Shown: one piece after another, positions 2,129-29,384 of the stretch | How the letters are laid out: the number at the start of each line of letters is the position of its first letter | Numbering within the stretch: the first letter of the stretch is position 1 | DNA from: Octopus sinensis | Lineage: Eukaryota | Length of the DNA: 30,003 bases | NCBI RefSeq assembly: GCF_006345805.1 | Contig: NW_021832663.1 | Location: 1-30,003 of the forward strand | Direction of reading: 5' to 3' | Translations under genes and position numbers: made by a program | Notes under the pieces: model-generated | What the model saw: only the letters and a program-made list of their open reading frames with translations | Databases searched by the model: none | Told to the model about the DNA's origin: nothing

Positions 2129-5100
2129 CATCACATCACAATCAGCCGAAACTACCTCACACGCCTCTGGCCTTAACAAAAAAGGGCAAACAAAATCTTT
2201 CAGAGAACAAGCAAATACTCTCATGAATCACTATGCGAAGATCAGTCACATGAAGATGGATAAAGACAACCGTTGCCGAAAATTTAAACTCGACAAAAAC
2301 TTCCCCTCTCCAGAAATCACAATATCGATTTCTGAAATAAGCCAACTCATCAAAAACGCTAAGAATTCTCACGCTTGTGGACCCGACGGTTTTTGCATAT
2401 ACCATCTGAAAAATCTTGGCCAAAATGGGTTGATTGCACTATCGGATATATTCAAAACATCGCTAAACTCAGGTCTAATACCTATGGTCTAGAAAAAATT
2501 TATTATAATTCCGATTTTGAAGCCCAATAAGGACCCCTGCGACCCCGCCTCGTTCAGGCCAATCTCACTTATCTCTGTCATATTAAAAATCCTAGAAAAA
2601 TTTGTCCTGAAATCAATTTACCCTTTCCTCACTTTCTCAAAGTCACAACATGGTTTCCGACCACAGCACTCAACAACAACACATCTATATACCCTAACGA
2701 GATTCATTGCAGACGGATTCAACAACTACTCTCCTCCCCAACGAACAATTCTGGCATCGATTGATATCAGCAAAGCGTTTGACCGGACTTCGCGTCATGT
2801 CCTAAGCTCAAAAATCTGCTCTTCTCCTATCCCTCATCGTCTGAAAATATGGCTATGTAGTTTCTTACCTGGTAGACTGGCTCAGACCAAATTCGGGTCA
2901 AAAAATTCCCGGTTTCGCTACTTACCTAATGGAGTACCTCAAGGCTCCTGTCTTTCTCCAGCCCTTTTCAACCTACACCTCAGTGATATGCCAACAAGCT
3001 CAGAAACACTACTCCTCTCTTACGCTGACGATCTTGCGTTCGCTTCCCGACACAAGATCATTAACACAGCGACTAGCTCACTTCAAACTCAACTTGACTC
3101 CCTAACCAAATGGCTAACATCTAACCATATGACTCCTTCAGCATCCAAATCATCTGTCAGGTTTTTACCTCTGATAACGACAATTCAACTTAAACCCACC
3201 CTCTATGTGGCCGGTGAAAGAATTCCTGTTGTAAAAAACCCAAAAATCCTTGGTATCGTATTCGATCAACGCCTTTCTTTTACACAACATGTAAAGTTCA
3301 TTTCCACCAAAGTCAAACGCAGGCTGAACGCATTATGTGCCTTATCAGGACAATCTTATGGCCAAGCCAAAGAATGCCTCGCTCTGGTCCACAGACAATT
3401 TGTCAGAACATCAATGAACTATGGTAGTCCGGCTTGGTCATGAAACCTCTCTCCATCAAATCTCCAAAAACTACAAAGAATCCAAAACTCAGGCCTCCGT
3501 ACAATAACTGGCTGCCTAGCCTCCACTTCCATCGATCATCTTCATTGGGAATCTTGTATCCTTCCGTTCGAAGACCATTGGAGATGAGAGGACTTCAATT
3601 CCTCTACGAAATACAGAATATCTCATCCATGCCACAAAATCTCTATCTCAAAACAAAAACATATTATCACTACAGTGGGCGCAAAAAAAATCCGGTTTTC
3701 TAATTTCTCTATTTTTTTATATTGTGCGATATAATATTTTTTTTTAATCTTAAATTTTAGTGAAAAGTAACTCTTATTTTTTTATTTTGATTATTTTCAT
3801 TATTTTTTTCAAGAGATATTTCCAATTAAATTTACAATGCGCAAAAAAAACCCGGTTTTTTAAAAAAATGTCAAATTAATATTTAATATGCCGTCCTTTA
3901 GCCATAAAAACATCGTACACCCTTCTCGGCATGCTGTTTATGAGTTTCTGTATTAGATCTTTCGGCATATTTTCCCAAATTTCGATAATTTTATCTTTCA
4001 GCTCATGCATATTTTTTGAGGATTTTCGTACAATTTACTTTTAATATATGCCCAAAGATGTTCTATTGGATTTAAATCTGGCGATTGCGGTGCCCAATCC
4101 AATAGTTTGACGCTTCTTTCGGCAAAGAAATCTTTCGTGATCTTTGATGTGTGTGGAGGAGCCATGTCTTGTTGGAATATGAATTCATTCAAGCACATTT
4201 TCGCAGCGGACTCCCACAGATTATTTGATAATGTTCACATAAGTTGCTGAGTTCATAGTTCCATTTATAAATACTAGATTGCCTACTCCATAATACCCGA
4301 AACATCCCCACACCATTATTTTTCCCCCTCCAAATTTAACAGTTGGAGATAAGTGCGATTTTTCTAGACGTGTGTTGTTTTTCCTATAACAAAATTCCTT
4401 TTTTTTGTGATTAAAAATTTCGAAACAGCATTCATCACTAAAAATAGTTGATTTCCATGACGTCATATTCAGTGCGATAAATTTTTTTGACAAGGAATAT
4501 CGTTTTTCGATATTAATTTTAGACAGATACGGTTTTTTTTGACACACACGTGAATATATTTCCTTTTGTTTCAGATAATTCCCAATTGTTCGTTTTGAGA
4601 CGATTTTTCCTGTCAAAGAATGAAGATCCTTTGACAGGCAACGGGAAGATTTTTTCGGATTGTCAGAAACAAGCGTCAATAAAGTATTTATATCATCATT
4701 ATTTAATGTCCTAGGTCTTCCAGAACCGGACAGTCTCTGTGTTGTTCCATATTTTTTTTATTTACGTATGTAATCTCCCACTGTTGATCTGGGAATTTCT
4801 ACTTCTTCTGAAATTTGTTTATATGTCCAATTAAGGAAATAAAGTTGAATAATTTGTCCTTTCACAATTTCTGAAATACACGACATCCAACAACAACAAA
4901 AATGACAACAATTTCAAATTTTGAGAATAAAAGACTCAATAATTAAAAAACCGAGTTTTTTTTGCGCATTTTAAAATTAAATTCAAGATATCTCTATGAA
5001 AAATAAAAAAATACTTAAAATTAAAAACATACTCGATTTACATTTCAAAATGATACTAAATTAAAAAAAAATAATATAAAATTTATATTGAAAAATTCGA

Positions 5101-5545
5101 AAAATAAGAAAACCGGATTTTTTTTGCGCCCACTGTACTCTAGCCGATCAATGCAGACCTCTCTCAAAAATACTCTTAACGAACAATGGGAAAACTGGGA
5201 AGAAATTAATTCACGATTACTTCTCAACTCGTGCTATCAGGATTCTTAAAAATAACAAACTCCTCGATTCTCCTCCGCCACCAGTCCATCCTTCAGAGCA
5301 ATCACTCGACAGGTACTTCCGTGTCCAGCTTGCACGACTTTGCTCTGGACATCATCCACTCTTTTTCGAAACACTCCGCACCCTCGCCCCTGAAGACCTT
5401 TTTTCCTGTCCTGGGCCGCCTCACCAGTCGCCACCTATTGGGATTCGGGATCTCTGGGAGCGCCCGATCGCCGCTGTCCGCTACCTGATTGCAGCCGGCT
5501 TCCTACATGCTAGAGAAGCCGGGGTAACTAACTAACTAACTAAAA
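2129..5545 (+). mobile_element. 5'-truncated non-LTR retrotransposon (jockey/I-group-like RT), interrupted by a Tc1 at 3673-5135
   Basis: ORF 2223-2492 (ACGPDGF) and ORF 2517-3443 contain FRPISL, QHGFRPQHST, DISKAFD, GVPQGSCLSPALFN and YADD. The C-terminal region resumes after 5137 (NKLLDSPPPPVHPSEQSL...QLARLCSGHHP...DLWERP). The 3' tail is (TAAC)4TAA at 5525-5543. Candidate TSD is aaaata (2123-2128 / 5546-5551). Confidence 0.9.
3673..5135 (-). mobile_element. Full-length Tc1 transposon (DD34E) with IR-DR type long imperfect TIRs; transposase pseudogenised
   Basis: TA|cagtgggcgcaaaaaaaatccggttttc at 3671-3700 and its inverse ending ...gcgcccactg|TA at 5135-5137. Inner direct repeats are at ~3839-3862 and ~4947-4967. 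The transposase runs 4886->3876 with a stop and frameshifts; motifs are FSDECCFEIF and FQQDMAPPH, with 34 residues from D to the E of SPDLNPIE. Confidence 0.95.
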
Positions 5546-5621
5546 AAAATATTTCTGTGCAGCACGCGGATAGTCTTAATCATCGATTTGGCCCTTGTGC
5601 TCCAATGGTTGAGAAGCCCTG
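5546..5621 (+). mobile_element. hAT (Buster/Charlie-like) right terminus remnant
   Basis: Ends ccaatggttgagaagccctg (reverse complement cagggcttctcaaccattgg, a typical hAT TIR). It is followed by atttaact, an 8-mer with central TA as expected for a Buster TSD. Confidence 0.65.
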
Positions 5622-5712
5622 ATTTAACTCTCGATTAGATGAGCCTAAAGAAATAAAAAAAATGAGTTAAGATCAAGTCATTAATAATAATTTAAACAAA
5701 ATTTGCGCAGCC

Positions 5713-6440
5713 TTATGCAGCAGGAGCTGCTTGTGGAGCTAACTTTTTGTTTTTTTCTTCTGATAGCAGTACGAGATCTTTCTTAATATGCATCGTTTCT
5801 TTCAGCTATAAATTATTTTGTCCCTACTTTTCTTCTGAGTCTGCATCAAACTCTTCTTTTTTGATTTTTATAAAAAAATTTTGGTAATTTTTATTGTTTT
5901 GAACATGCAGGTTGGAGTTTCTTTTAGGGTGTTCATATAGGGTTCGGAAGTTATGAGCTTTTCTTGCAGATTTTTTTGTAGTAGCGTATCATCTTACCAC
6001 AATGGAAGGGGTGGATATCGAAAGATTATCCTCGAAATTCGGTGAAATCTCATCGTTTTTTAGTGAAAATTTTGCACGAGACTCTCCGATATCTGCTTCT
6101 GTAAGGCCTCCTTGAACTGCTATATCGACTTTAGTTCCGGTTACTGTCGATCACAAAATTACATAGGCATTGAATATTTCCATTGCTCCCTTTAATTGAA
6201 ACGGCAATTGATAAAAAGACCTGTGACTGCGACAGCTTGGGGGAAAATCCATCCAGCATTGACTCTAAAATCGAAAACGAGGTCTTTTAACCAGGGTTCT
6301 TCTTTCATCTCTTCAACTACTTGCTTAAAGTCCGCTTCAGAAGAGTAAGTGGGGTCTTGATAGAATAAAAAGAGACTGATGTGACCAATCACGCCATCAT
6401 CATAAGGAACGGTTTCTGATTCAAAACTTGTTTTTTTTTA
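5713..6440 (-). pseudogene. tsp: Chlamydial-type tail-specific protease (Tsp/Prc, peptidase S41) pseudogene, C-terminal half with internal deletion
   Basis: Minus-strand translation across frameshifts: FESETVPYDDGVIGHISLFLFYQDPTYSSEADFKQVVEEMKEEPWLKDLVFDFRVNAGWIFPQAVAVTGLFI / IAVSIKGSNGNIQCL / GTKVDIAVQGGLTEADIGESRAKFSLKNDEISPNFEDNLS / QKNLQEKL...EPYMNTLK / VQNNKNYQNFFIKIKKEEFDADSEEK*GQNNL*LKETMHIKKDLVLL...APAA* (stop 5713-5715). These blocks follow chlamydial Tsp (EPYGDGVIGKITLHSFY; DLRENxGG...QAVxVTGLF; NKNYQNFLK; GQNDLQL). Confidence 0.85.
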
Positions 6441-6764
6441 AAAAAATTTTTCACAAATAATTTCTTTTAAGTTGTCTTTTAGAATGTTATGTTCACAAGC
6501 CGCGTGGAACTTGTTAAATCTATGATATAAGTATCTGGGAGTACTTGAGAGTTCAGCTAGAAAAATCAAAAAATCCGACATTCTGAAAATAATTCTTGAA
6601 AATAGATCGATTTCAAATTCAATTTTTTGTAATAATTAGATATCTAAAAGGCTTAGAATATAAAAACATGCCAATTCCAGCGTCTATTAACCTGTAATAA
6701 TCAAAATTAGTTGTGAGTACACTTTTATACATGGTTTTTTTTGAATTGAGGATGATATAATTTG

Positions 6765-6950
6765 ATGGATATTGAAAATACAAAGGTTACTTCTGCATTT
6801 ACGCATGAGCCTCCAAAAAAATTGTTTCGATCACTCAAGCAGCTTTTATAAACGGTGTCACACGGAAAGCGATTTATGTTGCGATTAAGAAAAAGAAGCT
6901 GAGACTACAATAAGATGCGACTCATTTGACAGTCAAATTAGATGATCTAG
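6765..6950 (+). pseudogene. euo: Chlamydial EUO (early upstream ORF) DNA-binding repressor pseudogene, N-terminal HTH only
   Basis: ATG 6765 gives MDIENTKVTSAFTHEPPKK. After a 1-nt frameshift in the A7 run (6815-6821) it reads IVSITQAAFINGVTRKAIYVAIKKKKLRLQ*DATHLTVKLDDL. C. trachomatis EUO has RVSITQAAKLHNVTRQAIYVAIKQKKLKASK-TTRWEIDLQDL. A GAGGA SD-like motif is at 6748-6752. Confidence 0.92.
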
Positions 6951-6952
6951 GT

Positions 6953-7300
6953 GCATCAGTGATCATTGTTAGAGATGATGTCGCTCTGTTAGGTACATAA
7001 TAAAGCGTGTGCCTACCAATCATTTTTAGGAATTCAATCAAAAAATAAGTCCCTGTAATGCCATCGACATCATTGTCACCGTATATGACGATCGTTTCTT
7101 TTCGCTCAATGGCTTGCATCATCCGATAGACTGCAATATCCATATCTAGAAATTGATCTGCCACCACTAAATTTGGTATTTTTGCATAAATGTATTTGCA
7201 GATCACTTCGAAAGACTGAGATCCTCTAGAAACAGAAACCTGAGCCTTTACCGGATGGATATTGAATTTTTTTAATAGAATCACACCATTCCGGTGAATA
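6953..7300 (-). pseudogene. recJ: RecJ ssDNA exonuclease pseudogene, N-terminal ~115 codons, chlamydial type
   Basis: KKFNIHPVKAQVSVSRGSQSFEVICKYIYAKIPNL...FLDMDIAVYRMMQAIERKETIVIYGDNDVDGITGTYFLIEFLKMIG...YYVPNR contains RecJ/DHH motif I (YGDxDxDG). The IHPxxAQxxxSRG N-terminus is typical of chlamydial RecJ. It is truncated before the DHH motif. Confidence 0.9.
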
Positions 7301-7334
7301 GATAGAATAGACTCAAAGAGGAATAGACTCAAGG

Positions 7335-7460
7335 AGTTCGTCCACATGAGCTCAATGTCTTCATGAATGCGATCAATAGTCGAATATCATTCAAAGAATA
7401 ACATTGATCGTCATCCATCTGCCAATAAATGAGTATGGAAGCTGAAACTGTTATGTTTTA
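7335..7460 (-). pseudogene. secF: SecF portion of secDF, short frameshifted fragment
   Basis: Across frameshifts it reads IGRWMTI..YSLNDI..DRIHEDIELM, matching the SecF TM4-5 motif IGALMTxxGYSLNDTIIxFDRIRED. It lies immediately upstream of recJ on the same strand, as secDF does in Chlamydiae. Confidence 0.7.
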
Positions 7461-7478: not shown

Positions 7479-7595
7479 ATGAATAATTCAAGAATTCTGT
7501 GTTTAAATAAGAACTACATATGGACAACTCAAGTCATTCCGAATTTTAATATTGAATATTTACCACCATACTCTCCTGTCATGAATCCCATAGAG
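7479..7595 (+). mobile_element. IS630/Tc1-superfamily DDE transposase fragment
   Basis: MNNSRI...IEYLPPYSPVMNPIE resembles MDNARIH...LPPYSPxLNPIE. It is cut off by the hAT end at 7596. Confidence 0.65.
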
Positions 7596-7810
7596 CAGTG
7601 TTTCTTAACCGTGTGGTCCTCAGAAATATGTTTAGGTCAATTAATTTTTATCAATATGGATTTACCAAATATGCTGGATCTGAAAACGTCTTTAAAGCGC
7701 AATGCATGATATGCGACGTCATAATGGGAAACAACTCGTTGAAGCTGTCACAATTAAAAAGACATAAGGAAACAAATCACCCACAAAATGCTGACACTGT
7801 CGAAAGGTAA
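7596..7810 (+). mobile_element. Buster-type hAT left terminus plus N-terminal BED-like transposase fragment
   Basis: TIR cagtgtttcttaacc starts at 7596, preceded by 8-mer ccaTAgag. The coding relic YQYGFT...KAQCMICDVIMGNNSLKLSQLKRHKETNHP matches the ZBED5/FAM200-type N-terminus. The right end was not found. Confidence 0.8.
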
Positions 7811-8239
7811 AAAATAAGATTGGTGACAATGAACCTGAAAAATGGTTTTCTCCAAGAACAGTTGATTAAATTACGAAATAATGTAAAGTTTACAGCTTTA
7901 CGGTTACCAACTATCCCATTTTCAGTTCAATTACACGCCTATTTTCCAACTTTTCGGCTGTATATTCTTTCTCCAAAATAATTGTTTACAGAGATTAAAA
8001 ATATATCTTTATATTATAGGGGTTTCCAGTTTTAATTATTTTAATGAAAATTTTTCAAATGAATGAACTTTAATTTTTTAAATTAAGCTGTGGTATTTAA
8101 TTAAAAAATTACACTACAAAATACAATCTTCTGGATTGAGAACTAAAGATACTTTACGGGACACCGATGTTAGACTATTACCCTGTTTCTCACTTTTTTT
8201 CTTTGATATGTGTGTAACTGCACATTTTCTGATTTTAAG

Positions 8240-8960
8240 ACAGACCTTTCCTTGTACACCAGACTTTTTCAAATTTCTTCGTGGACTTGAAAAAGACAGT
8301 CATCACATGATCGTCCTGACCGAAAACTCCATTGTTGATCACAATAAAATTTGATGCTCTAACATGGACAGATAATTTTCTTAATACGATTTTCTCCATT
8401 ATTTTTGACAGTGAGCAAATAAAACTTATAGGTCTGTAGTTGACAACCCGATCTTTGCTTTTCGCCGATTTTTATTTTGTCGGAGGTCGATGATAAATAA
8501 CCCAAAAACCAATTCATAGTGACCTCATTATAATTATTTGACAAATATTTCAAGAAGTCTTCCAGTCGCATTCTTATGTATTAAAAAATATATCCATGCA
8601 TACTATACTTTTTGGATCGACCTCTTTGACCGTTTCTAACAGTTCCCGAAATAGAGAATGGAGATCTATTTGCCATTAGCTGGCCATTCTTATTTTTTAA
8701 AGCAATCTCCTCTCCTTTGGAAGCCTCGCCCTTTAAACCATTTAGGCCTCCAAAAAATTTCGATTATTTTCATTCAGTATCAGACATTCGCTCCTCCTAA
8801 ATTTATTCTCCCCTTCTTTAGTTTTTGTAATAATCTCTTGAATATTATAAATTCTGATCCTGAATTCTTGACGATCAAAGTCATTGACACATCTTCATAA
8901 TCATTGTTTTTCTTTCTTCAAATTGCAAATTTTTTTATTTTAAGCATTTCTGTTATTTTG
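8240..8960 (-). mobile_element. Highly decayed LINE, pre-RT and RT domain 1-2 relic
   Basis: Minus strand reads VNYRPISFICSLSKIMEKIVLRKLSVHV, then in a shifted frame QQ.FRSGRSCDDCLFQVHEEI (NYRPIS and QxGFRxGRSC motifs). Stop-ridden K-rich linker lies upstream. A possible APE endonuclease remnant extends to ~9760 but is weak. Confidence 0.6.
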
Positions 8961-10896: not shown

Positions 10897-12848
10897 TCAT
10901 GACATTGGATGGTCCGCATCCGCAAACTTATCCCTCCTTTCCTTAGCTCTATCGCGGTACTTCGTCTGCCCCATGTCGACTTGAATTCCCCCCAATTTAG
11001 CCGAAACAGTCTCGCCAGGATGCCCCTTCTCGTTGTAAAATTCTTGCAATTTTGTCTAAAAATGCACTAAAAAATATACCAAATGCAATTTTGAAATCTT
11101 GACATGTTTTTCCAGCACAGTTTTATCCGTAAACTGCCTTCTGCACAAAAGACACACCAAACGAGTCCAATTCACAAAATTTTCACATTTTGTAGCTTCC
11201 TGACTTTCCACTGGTAGTACAAACTGAGTCGCACTTTCAACATTTCCATCAGTCGCTGACACATCACTCACATTTGACGACTTCTGAGCCGCTGCCCATT
11301 TCTTCATATCACGTTGAATTTTTTTGGCTGCCTTCACCTCAGCACTTTGCTTCTTTGCCTCAGATTTCTTTTCTGGTTGTTCTTTCTGTTCAACATGGAC
11401 CACATACGAAGTCCCATTCCAATACAAATATTGGCCAGTCATTGTGTTATAGAAATACTTTATATATATATTAAACTCTATACTTTAGAATTTGGGTCAT
11501 AGTACATCCCTGTAGACGTGTCGTAGTAATAACCCGACGTCTCATCGTAGACATATGAAGACTCCTCTAATAAGGCGTTAATAACAGTCACTCAAAATTG
11601 TCAGAGTACATACGATTCTGAGAAGTGACTGAACTCGATTGACTCATCCCTTTATTCATTGCCGCCTGAGCTGCCGCTGCTCCAACATTACTTGTGTCTG
11701 CTTGGTACATTTGCATCCCCGCCTCCACCCTCTTCTCTTCCAAGTGATGCAATGAGGCAATTCTACCATACTAATTATTAGCAAACATACATTGTCGCAA
11801 ATGTGTTACGAGCGTAGTTTACTAGTAGCTGTTTCCCGTCAATTTCGACAGGTTTTGTGCCAAGACTGAGTTCTTCCATAACTTTCCGTGCTTCAGTGAC
11901 CGTGGAGAATTCAACAAAGGCAAATCCCTTCGAAACCGAGGTCTCCATATCCCTCATCACATACAAATTCTTCAATGGTGTAGTCGTCCACTTGTTCCAG
12001 TTCAATATTAACGAATTTTCGTCAGTCAATGTGTCTAAACCCCGCAAAACGAGAGCTTTCAATCATAAAATGAGACGAACTATTGCAGGGGTTATTCCCA
12101 ATTTGATTATCCCCCTGCTCTGCCAAAACTTCTCCCTTGGACACAGAACATCGAAAGCAAAAAAATCGTTTTTTGAAGTTGTGTGTGTTGCACTTTGTGC
12201 AAGTCCAATCCTGGGAGACTGACTCTTCCGGATAGAGTGAGGACAGTGGTTTGGGTTCACAGTATGTCAAAGAAAGATCATACTTGTCCTGGAAATTCCA
12301 CGTGCCCTTGAAATTACAATAAAGTGAAATTACTTTTGTCCTGTTCATCCAATTTTGGGCTTGTTCGGGCGTTTGGAAGTCAAGGAAAGCAAAACCGCGA
12401 GAAATTCCTGAGAATTTGTTTATTTTTGTTAAAACCAGTGTCTTTTCGTTTGATAACTCGAATGTCTTGGACAGGAATACATTCTTTGACCATTTCGTCC
12501 ATAATCTATAAAATTGGTACATTTGTTGCTTTTTGACATGTTTTTCAGTTATAAACGTTGGAAGGTGACGAATCATTATGGTACAGGTCGGATTGGCAGG
12601 AATGTATCTCTCCTCCTGATTTTCTGACCGAAAAGATTTTCTTTTGGGAGAATATTCGCTGCGGCGATGTCTCCGATGTTCAGATTCTCGTCTTCTTTGT
12701 CTACGTTCGTCGGTACTGTATCTTTTGTGGGAACGGTGATGACGAGATCTAGAACTCCTGACACTGTTTAAATAATGTTTTATAATTGATACCGATCGTG
12801 GGAGTTTTCTCTAGAATCGGAACTAGATGTGGTGCTAACTCTTGACAT
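10897..12848 (-). CDS. RBM5/10: RBM5/RBM10-family splicing regulator (RS-rich N-term, RRM1, RanBP2 ZnF, RRM2, OCRE, C2H2 ZnF), multi-exon
   Basis: ATG 12848 (MSRVSTT). Motifs: [93 protein letters not shown]...[21 protein letters not shown]. Tiny GT-AG introns include 12764-12792 (29 nt) and 11056-11079 (24 nt). In-frame stop TGA at 10897-10899. Confidence 0.9.
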
Positions 12849-16496: not shown

Positions 16497-17477
16497 TCAA
16501 ATTATATTCCCATTAAGCGCAAGTTCGGATTCAACCGCAGATCTCAAATTTGAGGAAATCGAATGGGGAAACACAATATCAAAACGAACTTTCAAAAATC
16601 CTAGCTGCGAGGGGGATTTAACATAAGGAAGTCCCTCATTAGCAATCTTATAATCAGAATCAGGATTCACCGGAGAATGAAGAACCACTGATATTTTTCG
16701 CCCTCCCAACAAAGGAACAGTAATAGGCCGACCCAACAGTGCATCATACAGGGATATTTTCAATACATAAATCAAATTCTCCCCCTCACGTTTAAAAAGA
16801 GGATGAGGCTTGTCGCATATTTCAAAAACTATATTTGCAGGCAATCTCTGCGGGTTGATATCATCCCCAGCTCCCTCAAATGTAATTTTGGTCCCTGCCT
16901 TCCATCCAGGCTTTATTTTAATATCATAAATCTTCTCCTGCTGTACGCAGGAACCGTTCACTAGACATTTCCTCATGACTTTGACGTGCTTTGTTGTGCC
17001 AGTTTTTATGTCTTCCAGCGAAACTTGTAGTCGCTGCAACAAATCGGGATCTCTCTGCTTCCTTTGCATTGAAGGTCCACGATGACCAAATGAAGCTCCA
17101 AAAGGGCCTCCAAAAGGGCCACCAAAAGGACTAAATGTACTTCCATTTTCAAACATAGAAAAAGGATCATCCCCTCCAAAAAAACTACTAAACATGCTAA
17201 AAGCATCCCCAGTTGAGAAATGCGCTCCAAATCCATTGGCTTGACCACCACAAGAGTTTTTAAGTCCTTCTTCTCCATACTGGTCGTATATAGCTCTCTT
17301 ATTTTTATCAGAAAGCACACTGAAGGCTTCAGACACAGCCTTGAACTTCTCTTCGGCGTCAGGAGATTTATTTTTGTCAGGATGAAACTTGAGTGCCATT
17401 TTTTTGTACGCTTTCTTCAGCTGATCATCGTTAGCATCACGAGAAACACCAAGAATCTTATAATAATCAGCACCCAT
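16497..17477 (-). CDS. DNAJB: Class II Hsp40 / DnaJ subfamily B (DNAJB1/4/5-like), intronless, 326 aa
   Basis: J-domain with HPD ([16 protein letters not shown]), G/F-rich linker with [11 protein letters not shown], and C-terminal domain [15 protein letters not shown]...[10 protein letters not shown]...EGLP. Confidence 0.95.
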
Positions 17478-18040: not shown

Positions 18041-19774
18041 TCAAATTTGTACGCATTGAATTACTCCATATTCGAGAAGAAGAGAGAATAAAATAAATAT
18101 AACATATCCAAACATCATTGTAAGCCCAAGAAACTTTGACAATTTCCAACGGAAAGCAGCTATGATTAAAATTACACAGACAAGCATAGCCAATAACATT
18201 GAAATTGAGCAAACCAGTCCTTTACTATTGACACTGACAGGGCTTTTAAACACCATCCAATAGATAAGCCACGGAAATGGAAGTCTATCAAGTCAAAAAT
18301 AAATAAAACCCAACACAAGAATCAAAAATGTTACTCCCAACTGAACTAGAAACTGCCATGTCTCCAAACCCTTTTTTAGCCACGACATAGCTGCTTATCA
18401 AATCAGGAATGCTTGTTCCCGCTGCAAGGATTGTTAGTCCCATGACCTTATCATTATTGAGGATATTTCTAAACAAACTGTGCTCGGGATTCCCAGAGTC
18501 AAACCAATTTGATTGGCCCACCACACCATCAAATACGAGAATATACCAATCCAGATAATACTTCCTATAAACCCCAAAGGTGCAAATCTTTGTAATTTCT
18601 ACAATTTATTACTGATTTGTTACCTTTCTTTTAATATCTGGGACTGTTATGTAAAGTAGCACTGTTATTGGTAGTAAAACTATAAAGGCGGCTCTTTTTC
18701 CATTAGAACTAGGCCAAGATAAACTACGTTCTTCGCCATCATCGACAAATGTTACCTAAGAATTAAGTATTGGTGTATTTTTACTTGTTGAGGCTGATCC
18801 ACGAGGTCCAAGTCAATAGTGACCTCATTTTTTCTGATAGGTTCGGTTGGTTTCTAAATAAGGTTTAAAAATCAAACTTTGACTTCCTGGGTTTCCACTG
18901 CCATTTGATTCATCTTAGCCTTCACCACGTTAGCCATGCAAGGTTCTTGGAAAATGATAAAATTGAAAATAACTTTCATTCTTTGGTAAAATGTTGCTGG
19001 CTAAAAGTATCTGGTAAATTCCCCTTCTAAATTGACTCCTTCTTCCATGGATCACCGAGATCTAAGAAAGTCAAATCTGTTTAATTTCACCATAGAACAC
19101 TTCCTTTCGTCCTCGGGAGGAGGTTTTTGATGAAGAATTTTAGTTTTTACAAACATTTCCATAAAAGTATTAAACTTCATAAAAACCACATATAATATAT
19201 ACCAAACAAACAAAATTAAAGCTTCCCACCAATAAATAAACCCATCAAGGAAAAATGCCACCGTCATCACCAGAGATACTATATAGAATGTGACATCACG
19301 AAAGAGTGGCCACCAAGAAAGGACAAGCACAGTTCCACTTGCAAGAGTACAAATGCTGATCACAAACATCAAGTTAAACACAGCTGAGCCGACAATGGTT
19401 CCAATCCCCACATCATTCTTGGCTAGGAAGACACCAATGATAGAAGTAAATAATTCAGGAGCACTCCCGCCCGCTGCCATAAAAGTAGCCCCTGCCACAT
19501 CTTCGCTGATTTGTAGTTTTTTAGCGATTATTTCCAACGATGGAACAAAATATTCATCACAGACAATGGCCAAAGCAATAAACATGTAAATAACGCCAAT
19601 CAAGTGAAGGATAACTGCCCCTTTTCTTCTCTGACAATTATCAAATAAATCGACGGGGTAGTCCCCGTAAACGGGATCGGCACATCCGCCGGTGTTATTT
19701 ACTGCCAGCAATTTAAGGGCTTGTACGTCCTGGAAAAAGAAAAGTAGGCCAAGCAATATAATTTTTTTCACCAT
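18041..19774 (-). CDS. SLC24A: K+-dependent Na+/Ca2+ exchanger (NCKX, SLC24A1/2-like), multi-exon
   Basis: Signal peptide, then [19 protein letters not shown] and alpha-1 repeat [19 protein letters not shown]...[10 protein letters not shown]. Alpha-2 repeat: [15 protein letters not shown]...[16 protein letters not shown] 32-nt intron at 18447-18478 joins GIPST|VMGL. Stop at 18041-18043. Confidence 0.95.
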
Positions 19775-26170: not shown

Positions 26171-26491
26171 TCATTTACCTGGATATTGGTAAACTTTACT
26201 TCCTCTGGCTTTTTTCAATATTTTTTCTGAATATTCAGAACTCCTTTCTACTTCTATATTAAATCCACTTTCACATTTCATAATGAGTTTATGAATATCT
26301 TTGTAACTTTTATTTTTAACATTTATATTGTCAATTTTTAAAATGACGTCTTTAACCTGTAAACCAGCTTTTTCAGCAGGCGAATTGGGAATTATCTCAT
26401 TTATTATGTGAGTTTTTTGACCCGGAATCGAATCCAAGATGATTCCGTACATAAAGTATGGGCGTTTCAATACTATTCTGCGTTGATCCAT
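26171..26491 (-). CDS. Small single-PDZ-domain protein (NHERF-like PDZ), intronless, 106 aa
   Basis: Intact ORF: RRIVLKR..MYGIIL...IINEIIPNSPAEKAGLQVKDVILKIDNINVKNKSYKDIHKLI, carrying the PDZ signature P.SPA..AGL...D.I..I....V. Confidence 0.75.
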   Translation of the reverse strand: MDQRRIVLKRPYFMYGIILDSIPGQKTHIINEIIPNSPAEKAGLQVKDVILKIDNINVKNKSYKDIHKLIMKCESGFNIEVERSSEYSEKILKKARGSKVYQYPGK

Positions 26492-28838: not shown

Positions 28839-29195
28839 AGCGCAATCAGAAGAATTTGCGTAAAAATATTAACTATTTACTTGAGTTTTTCGTAAAGATA
28901 GAATTTATTTTCGGTATGCCTCTTTTCCTAAACTTTTTTATTATTCAAAAATAATTTTTTAAATAGATAACCGAAGGAGGAAAAACGAAGCTGAAGAAAA
29001 AACGGTCAGCTTAATAAGGTAATTAATTAAATTTTTTTTGTGTGTCGCTTTCTTGCCTGCCGCATTTCCGCCTGCCGTATCTCCCCCTGCCCCATTCCGC
29101 CAGTAAAAAATAAAAAAAGAAAAAAAAGGAAATTACAAAGGAAAAATGAAAAAATTAAATATAAAAAAAATAAACCACAAAAAATGAAAAAAAAG

Positions 29196-29384
29196 TTTGC
29201 AATGACAATAAACAAGGCCCAGGGACAGTCATTAAAGGTAGTTGGGTTATTTTTAGAGAGTGAGTGCTTTTCACATGGACAGCTGTATGTGGGATGCTCG
29301 AGGGTAGGCAGAAGAGAAAATTTATTCATATATGCCAAGGAAGGACGGACGACAAACATCGTTTATCAACAGGCGATAGAATAG
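29196..29384 (+). pseudogene. Helitron PIF1-like helicase C-terminal fragment
   Basis: FAMTINKAQGQSLKVVGLFLESECFSHGQLYVGCSRVG...NIVYQQAIE* contains helicase motifs V and VI of Helitron RepHel. Confidence 0.93.

Follow-up and report, generated by a model that had tools for sequence, protein, structure and literature searches.

Insertions of bacterial DNA in animal nuclear genomes are known from the Wolbachia-to-host transfers of arthropods and nematodes, and genes of chlamydial origin, which are ancient, expressed and functional, are known from plants and algae. EUO is a Chlamydiae-specific protein with tandem winged helix-turn-helix (wHTH) domains, which acts as the repressor of late developmental genes by binding Euo boxes at their promoters. 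It is present in all chlamydiae, where it is vertically inherited, and no other conserved transcription factor is exclusive to the phylum (PMC4652624, PMC4989314). In Waddlia chondrophila, Euo features two TorI-like wHTH domains (residues 6-62 and 78-137), with Y31, R47 and Y100 as functional residues (PMC4989314), while the EUO of C. trachomatis (CT446, 183 aa) was Chlamydiales-specific in a BLAST screen, in which the Protochlamydia homologue was 139 aa long (PMC1403754). Here, we study a euo remnant found in a 30,003 bp stretch of Octopus sinensis DNA (“the window”), which corresponds to the entire unplaced contig VCDQ01010863.1 of the assembly GCA_006345805.1 (PacBio and Hi-C), as shown by an exact look-up of its intact 326-aa DnaJ ORF. 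We consider it probable that this remnant is a dead euo gene lying inside a chlamydial insert, itself embedded in octopus DNA, and that the insert has decayed neutrally from a donor resembling an uncultured chlamydia represented by a metagenome locus (L084, see below).

Like the Wolbachia insertions, the window would thus hold a non-functional fragment of an intracellular bacterium, flanked by host repeats and drifting towards host composition, but the donor is here a chlamydia, the host a cephalopod mollusc and the insert very small. With the chlamydial genes of plants and algae, it would share a chlamydial donor and a eukaryotic recipient, whereas what the window holds is a dead regulator fragment, useless outside a chlamydial cell. 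Both kinds of object, i.e., EUO pseudogenes and animal genomes with bacterial DNA, are already known, whereas the donor-host pair is new to the literature that we searched for chlamydia in cephalopods or for horizontal transfer in octopus, which returned nothing relevant. We lean towards regarding it as the first documented germline transfer from a chlamydia to a cephalopod, with a donor lineage (related to marine Simkaniaceae) that persists almost unchanged in saline-sediment metagenomes. Thanks to a living relative that is nearly identical, the case is resolved unusually well.

Positions 6748-6950 read as a dead euo gene, of which they cover the ribosome-binding site, the start codon and codons 1-62. 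A Shine-Dalgarno-like GAGGA (6748-6752) precedes an ATG (6765-6767), from which frame 1 reads MDIENTKVTSAFTHEPPKKL. At a run of seven A (6815-6821), a net shift of -1 moves the remnant from frame 1 into frame 3, which reads KKIVSITQAAFINGVTRKAIYVAIKKKKLRLQ, then meets a TAA (6911-6913) and continues as DATHLTVKLDDLG, while inserting one A into the run gives ...HEPPKKIVSIT, with two K. No long open reading frame (ORF) spans the region, and the homology to euo stops exactly at 6950, i.e., at codon 62 of 149. A preliminary description, made from the bases alone and accurate in all its sequence features, had recognized the first HTH of EUO in this peptide, and rightly so: tandem wHTH proteins of 149 aa align with the remnant over their residues 1-62, hence over the first of the two TorI/excisionase-like domains found in CT446 and in the Euo of Waddlia. 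As in these proteins, the remnant keeps the VSIT.AA.IN.VTR.AIYVAIK core along with the first DNA-binding Tyr (AIYVAI), a strong Shine-Dalgarno region, a start codon and the neighbours tsp and recJ. It differs from them in being a pseudogene (with a frameshift, a stop, an Arg-to-His replacement and no second wHTH) set in animal DNA.

When the joined peptide was searched with phmmer against 1.84 billion representative proteins, 35 matches were obtained at E<=1e-3 (best: 3.8e-11), among which 33 are EUO-type proteins with the core VVSITEAARINNVTRQAIYVAIKQKKL.A.KD.TRWTI.L.DLE that, where full length, also bear a second HTH. The two exceptions are a repetitive junk protein and a lower-scoring four-repeat HTH_17 protein, which collects 41 bits summed over its repeats versus 58 bits for the best EUO match. 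At face value, the peptide might nevertheless be a fragment of a generic excisionase, MerR or HTH_17 protein from a phage or a non-chlamydial bacterium, resembling EUO by chance, all the more as EUO itself has the excisionase-like HTH_17 fold and is annotated as “excisionase family” in some sources. However, Pfam HTH_17 does not detect the peptide (for which the Pfam and NCBIfam profiles returned no usable match at all), the four-repeat protein is the only non-EUO HTH match and scores below EUO, and the 85% identity seen at the DNA level is not confined to the coding part of euo but extends to the sequence upstream of it and to tsp and recJ, its chlamydial neighbours. Taken together, the phmmer matches and the DNA alignment to L084 refute a generic origin, to which we grant next to no probability. 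Two further searches were less informative: a word-indexed protein search found nothing, because the sequence of the peptide is too decayed, and a PDB sequence search with an intact EUO returned no solved EUO and a weak match to 2kfs only.

The gene neighbourhood is equally chlamydial. A minus-strand ORF (6922-7347), for which an exact look-up in public assemblies gave no record, encodes a RecJ N-terminus (TIGR00644, 1.3e-20; Pfam DHH), and the best relative retrieved for it from the databases pointed to a Rhabdochlamydiaceae-like locus (L001), in which secDF and recJ are followed by the convergent gene of a double-HTH_17 protein of 149 aa, then by tsp and gltX. This 149-aa protein, for which 3354 homologues were found in a large database, is 57% identical to the window peptide (E 9e-18), and its residues Y38, R54 and Y107 correspond to Y31, R47 and Y100 of the Waddlia Euo at a constant offset of 7, in the same domain layout. 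A scan of GTDB (one genome per species, 185,579 species) yielded 485 EUO relatives, of which the best 80 were examined: most come from metagenome-assembled genomes (MAGs) labelled as members of the Chlamydiae group, the rest having vague or Verrucomicrobia labels, and tsp adjoins euo in 78 of these 80 loci. As for the window, it contains remnants of all four genes of the tsp - euo - recJ - secDF neighbourhood, whose order and strands are as expected. Since EUO is confined to chlamydiae, 186 bases suffice to name the donor phylum, and the status of phylum-diagnostic marker initially given to the remnant agrees with both the literature and these 80 relatives. We also observed that several public MAGs (GTDB loci L010, L013, L014, L047, L048 and others) combine an environmental-type EUO and chlamydial synteny with labels such as “Verrucomicrobia bacterium”, “uncultured Verrucomicrobiae” or “Chlamydia trachomatis isolate ZH-03apr19-43”, which look wrong.

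A metagenome scan with the window peptide returned one outstanding match, L084, on the JGI contig Ga0180433_10000176 (108.6 kb). Its EUO is 74% identical to the remnant over residues 1-62, including the N-terminus (MDMDNTQDTPAFTHEAPKKVVSIT... in L084 and MDIENTKVTSAFTHEPPKKIVSIT... in the window), a part of the protein that varies freely among other EUOs. The L084/L175 EUO and the remnant have in common the N-terminus MD(M/I)(D/E)NT..T.AFTHE.PKK and the motifs NGVTR, LRAQKDAT and KLDDL, with a DNA identity of 85-90% over the main blocks, but collapse and neutral decay have affected only the window copy, the metagenome copy being intact. All other loci fetched, including genus-level relatives of L084 (Tara, JGI, SRA), show at most ~66-76% DNA identity. 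We take the donor to be nearly identical to the uncultured chlamydia on Ga0180433_10000176. The L084 copy stands intact among intact bacterial genes and reveals the ancestral state of each lesion.

According to the DNA alignment to L084, the frameshift goes back to the donor codons CCA AAG AAA GTT, which became CCAAAAAAATT through a net loss of one base and a G>A change that extended the A run, and the stop to a donor AAA (encoding an invariant Lys) turned into TAA. The homology to the donor euo ends after ...GATGATCTAG, so that codons 63-149 are gone, and with them the second DNA-binding Tyr. The second wHTH disappeared in a gap of 2868 bp, which makes the sequence a remnant of an EUO member and not an intact member. 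Upstream of the gene, the Shine-Dalgarno sequence of the donor, GAGGAGGA, lies 9 nt before the ATG and was changed into GAGGATGA in the window; nearly all of the 80 chlamydial euo loci feature a GGAGGA-type motif a few nt before the ATG, with variants such as AAGAGGA and CGGAGGA. At the protein level, the remnant retains 26 of the 35 columns conserved in >=95% of the 80 chlamydial EUOs. The nine lost columns (E>Q, Q>K twice, A>L, K>stop, R>H, W>L, I>V and N>G), seven of which are invariant in all 80, include the DNA-binding Arg (R>H; DATHL versus DATRW). Among them, N>G (N32G) is a clade character rather than decay, NGVTR being common to L084 and its whole clade. An early argument about age, built on the loss of invariant residues with respect to the family consensus, was dropped once L084 had supplied the real ancestral sequence. 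Regarding the preliminary description, its surviving start codon and Shine-Dalgarno-like motif are both homologous to those of L084 (the extended motif having been hit once), and the single-base loss in the A run and the TAA that it reported are both present, but it understated the damage, which also comprises the missing codons 63-149 and the nine replacements at conserved columns. Four defects prevent the remnant from making EUO: the frameshift, the premature stop, the loss of invariant residues (the DNA-binding Arg among them) and the absence of the whole second wHTH. We regard it as biologically inert, without any function now, and repression of late promoters is not expected of it.

The insert as a whole is delimited by six blocks collinear with L084 (Table 1), which place it at 5627-7426. 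It reads as a collinear, deletion-collapsed 1.8 kb copy of ~6.2 kb of chlamydial chromosome, encompassing the region downstream of tsp, tsp, euo, recJ and the end of secDF. Its homology edges are sharp, starting abruptly at 5627 and ending at 7426, and no further donor DNA was found elsewhere in the 30 kb window when queried with 20 kb of donor context. Relative to the donor, five gaps can be counted (252, 379, 666, 2868 and 327 bp). The largest one, at the euo/recJ junction, removed the 3' part of euo, a tRNA U5-methyltransferase gene and most of recJ, while 327 bp are missing at the recJ/secDF junction, where a 10-nt filler was copied from the adjacent sequence. The resulting duplication resembles the templated insertions with microhomology that end-joining or slippage repair produces. 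Within the blocks, the 89 bases that follow tsp differ from the donor at 6 of 86 aligned positions, the C-terminal part of tsp is 65% identical to residues 513-643 of the L084 Tsp (tblastn) and has two stops in the donor frame, the euo upstream region (aligned to L084 4827-5000) has 145 matches and 16 mismatches, and the recJ remnant is 81% identical to L084 at the amino-acid level. As a side note, the gene located between euo and recJ in the donor clade (L084/L175 10515-11777; L164-L172) encodes a tRNA (uracil-5)-methyltransferase of 420 aa and overlaps the 3' end of recJ; this interval is the one lost from the window, and L001 has merely a 60-aa ORF between euo and recJ.

A bacterial segment on an animal contig could also be an assembly artefact, in which reads from a chlamydia present in octopus tissue were chimerically joined to host reads, without any genomic insertion. 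The contig is indeed short (30,003 bp) and unplaced, and the donor lineage and its relatives are known from saline or marine samples, including Tara. Nevertheless, tsp, euo and recJ would be intact if they came from a living symbiont, whereas the window shows 6.2 kb collapsed to 1.8 kb by five gaps, with stops and frameshifts, nine highly conserved EUO columns replaced and a ratio of non-synonymous to synonymous differences (pN/pS) of ~0.8. Moreover, both edges of the insert abut animal-type repeats within the length of one long read. Since a live bacterium would give intact genes and since the insert fits inside single long reads, we deem a chimeric contig unlikely. Under the alternative of a true insertion into octopus DNA, which we prefer, an intracellular chlamydia would have released DNA that was end-joined into a germline chromosome break, the five gaps would have arisen at integration or later, and the insert would then have drifted neutrally to ~10% substitutions (biased from GC to AT) and 24 small indels.

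The insert differs from L084 at 174 of 1699 aligned bases (10.2%) and by 24 small indels, with a substitution spectrum of 109 GC>AT versus 34 AT>GC changes. Coding blocks were compared by codon position, the tsp blocks being treated separately and gapped codons being masked. Differences at the first, second and third positions amount to 11/5/3 for euo (dN 0.140, dS 0.024), 15/10/9 for recJ (dN 0.101, dS 0.090), 11/9/16 for the C-terminal block of tsp (dN 0.077, dS 0.156) and 15/10/12 for its middle block (dN 0.115, dS 0.204). Overall, they are even over the three codon positions, with a pooled pN of 0.095 and a pooled pS of 0.115. When amino-acid changes were polarised with 5-8 outgroup chlamydiae, 76 fell on the window branch and a single one on the L084 branch, 17 being ambiguous. 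These even codon positions, the bias from GC to AT and the 76:1 polarity lead us to interpret the insert as a neutrally decayed copy of a source almost identical to L084. Alternatively, the decay could have taken place mostly in the bacterium, i.e., in a degenerating host-restricted chlamydial symbiont from which an already-dead segment was recently transferred. This would account for the fact that there is no synonymous excess relative to L084, and an AT-biased spectrum is also typical of degenerating endosymbionts. Yet, no such degenerate genome turned up in any search, all relatives carry intact genes, and the GC content of the insert (0.347) has moved most of the way from that of the donor (0.408) to that of the host (0.329), so that we find decay before transfer unlikely; in either case, the present context of the segment is animal DNA.

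Regarding the donor, the preliminary description had suspected, from the wording NGVTR and DAT..LDDL, that the peptide was closer to environmental chlamydiae than to Chlamydiaceae. Both motifs are shared with L084 and with EUOs labelled Simkaniaceae and Neptunochlamydia, and the occurrence of NGVTR in L084 and its clade turns this hunch into a true lineage signal. Exact look-ups showed that the EUOs closest to that of L084 are labelled Simkaniaceae bacterium (QVL58362.1, MDJ0651392.1), Candidatus Neptunochlamydia sp. REUL1 (WP_316355965.1), the marine-sediment MAG K1060chlam2 or Tara sequences. Similarly, the Tsp, RecJ, SecDF and GltX proteins of L084 are 70-80% identical to those of the loci so labelled, versus 60-73% for the GTDB loci of Rhabdochlamydiaceae or Parachlamydiales. 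With its 149 aa, the donor EUO is also of the environmental type, as in Protochlamydia, in contrast to the longer CT446. Because its EUO falls in the “NGVTR” clade with Simkaniaceae and Candidatus Neptunochlamydia, the donor is an environmental chlamydia, probably marine or saline, which is related to Simkaniaceae and not a member of Chlamydiaceae. A placement at the family level from the GTDB set alone was tried and abandoned, the best EUOs reaching an identity of only 56-70% in the core and the summed tsp, euo and recJ scores singling out no labelled locus. As for sample origins, JGI sample 3300018080 is presumably Salton Sea sediment.

Several points weigh against a neutrally decayed insert of this origin in the octopus genome. 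First, the evidence for the host junction comes from one unplaced PacBio contig, and the frameshift in the A7 run, taken alone, could be a homopolymer error of long reads. Second, Chlamydiaceae were set apart on the basis of the closest relatives and of the length of CT446, and the family of L084 is deduced from relatives at 70-82% amino-acid identity. Third, there is no synonymous excess (pS minus pN = 0.02 +/- 0.02), which implies that the living relative has hardly diverged over the time in which the insert accumulated 10% of changes. Such a pattern requires a slow bacterial clock, a fast host clock or some pre-transfer decay; it is noteworthy in that it constrains the relative clock rates.

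If the insertion is genuine, the octopus germline would have been accessible to a chlamydia at some time in the past, and the fragment would be a datable marker of the association. Other parts of the donor genome (108 kb-plus) may then be present elsewhere in Octopus genomes. The value of the euo remnant is that of a marker of DNA transfer from a chlamydia to a cephalopod, and the flanking blocks (78-90% DNA identity) narrow the donor to one uncultured lineage. Provided that the junctions hold in reads, the locus would be the record of a past intimate association of a marine chlamydia with the octopus germline, datable by its presence or absence across Octopus species, and, the ancestral sequence being essentially known, it would provide a cephalopod genome with an internal gauge of neutral decay. 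From the perspective of genome curation, the contig is not to be thrown out as simple contamination.

At the assembly level, the bacterial insert is flanked by animal-type repeats and genes on both sides (Table 1), as revealed by scanning the flank translations for domains with X at stop positions. Given that the contig is unplaced and that the identity of the host comes from the assembly label only, the recipient might not be the octopus but another eukaryote of the sample, such as an octopus parasite or commensal. However, the flanks are typical of a repeat-rich animal genome (non-LTR reverse transcriptase, Tc1/Tc3, Helitron-like helicase, Spin-doc) and contain DNAJB, an NCKX-type exchanger and a RanBP zinc-finger RNA-binding protein, and their GC content of 33% fits as well. 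We therefore hold a foreign eukaryotic recipient to be very unlikely.

Table 1. Features of the 30,003 bp window, with the corresponding positions of L084 and the DNA identity of the blastn blocks.
Feature	Window positions	Strand	L084 positions	DNA identity	Remarks
Non-LTR reverse transcriptase debris	2517-3443	+			Domain scan
Tc3-type transposase HTH debris	4221-4679	-			Domain scan
blastn block: tsp 3' end and downstream	5627-6143		2620-3148	89.4%	
Left insert end	5627-5715				Region following tsp in the donor; covers the 3' end of a small convergent ORF
tsp (tail-specific protease) remnant, C-terminal block	5716-6143	-			Stops and small indels
tsp remnant, middle block (blastn block: tsp middle)	6154-6464	-	3401-3719	84.0%	252 bp of donor sequence lost between middle and C-terminal blocks
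Small tsp block, further 5' (blastn block)	6463-6524	-	4099-4160	79%	379 bp lost on 3' side, 666 bp on 5' side
blastn block: euo upstream and codons 1-62	6600-6950		4827-5187	85.5%	E ~1e-113
euo upstream region (donor intergenic DNA and 5' UTR)	6600-6764	+			Shine-Dalgarno remnant GAGGATGA at 6748-6755
euo remnant, codons 1-62, first wHTH only	6765-6950	+			Frameshift and stop
Blunt junction of euo codon 62 and recJ codon ~130	6950-6951				No filler; blastn block ends
recJ remnant, N-terminal ~125 codons (DHH domain start; blastn block: recJ N-terminus)	6951-7321	-	8056-8428	90.3%	Inside accidental ORF 6922-7347
16-nt tandem duplication (GAATAGACTCAAAGAG / GAATAGACTCAAGGAG) at recJ/secDF junction	7305-7336				Repeat search
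secDF remnant and right insert end (blastn block: secDF)	7331-7426	-	8756-8856	78%	Match inside 1523-aa SecDF gene of L084
DDE_3 remnant, weak	7479-7709	+			Domain scan; directly right of insert
Spin-doc-type zinc finger remnant	7598-7810	+			Domain scan; directly right of insert
RanBP2-type zinc-finger RNA-binding protein	11056-12576	-			Probable host exon or retrocopy
DnaJ subfamily-B-like ORF, 326 aa, intact, intron-less	16497-17477	-			Pfam DnaJ and DnaJ_C
Na/Ca(-K) (NCKX-type) exchanger domain	19052-19774	-			Probable host exon or retrocopy
PDZ domain	26171-26491	-			Probable host exon or retrocopy
Helitron-like helicase end	29040-29384	+			Domain scan

A search of the insert edges for target-site duplications or terminal repeats returned nothing but a weak inverted repeat of 28 nt, which we treated as chance. 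Imperfect (79% complementary), it is located at 5545-5572 / 7606-7633 and brackets the insert, ~55 bp beyond its left edge and 180 bp beyond its right edge; besides chance, it may correspond to the ends of a host DNA transposon that received the bacterial DNA. To the left of the insert, the region 5200-5560 is GC-richer and has no bacterial match; one of its frames, read by eye, may be a degenerate C-terminal part of a LINE ORF2 (..LARLCSGHHPLF..). Finally, the DnaJ subfamily-B-like ORF is the sole long intact gene on the contig.

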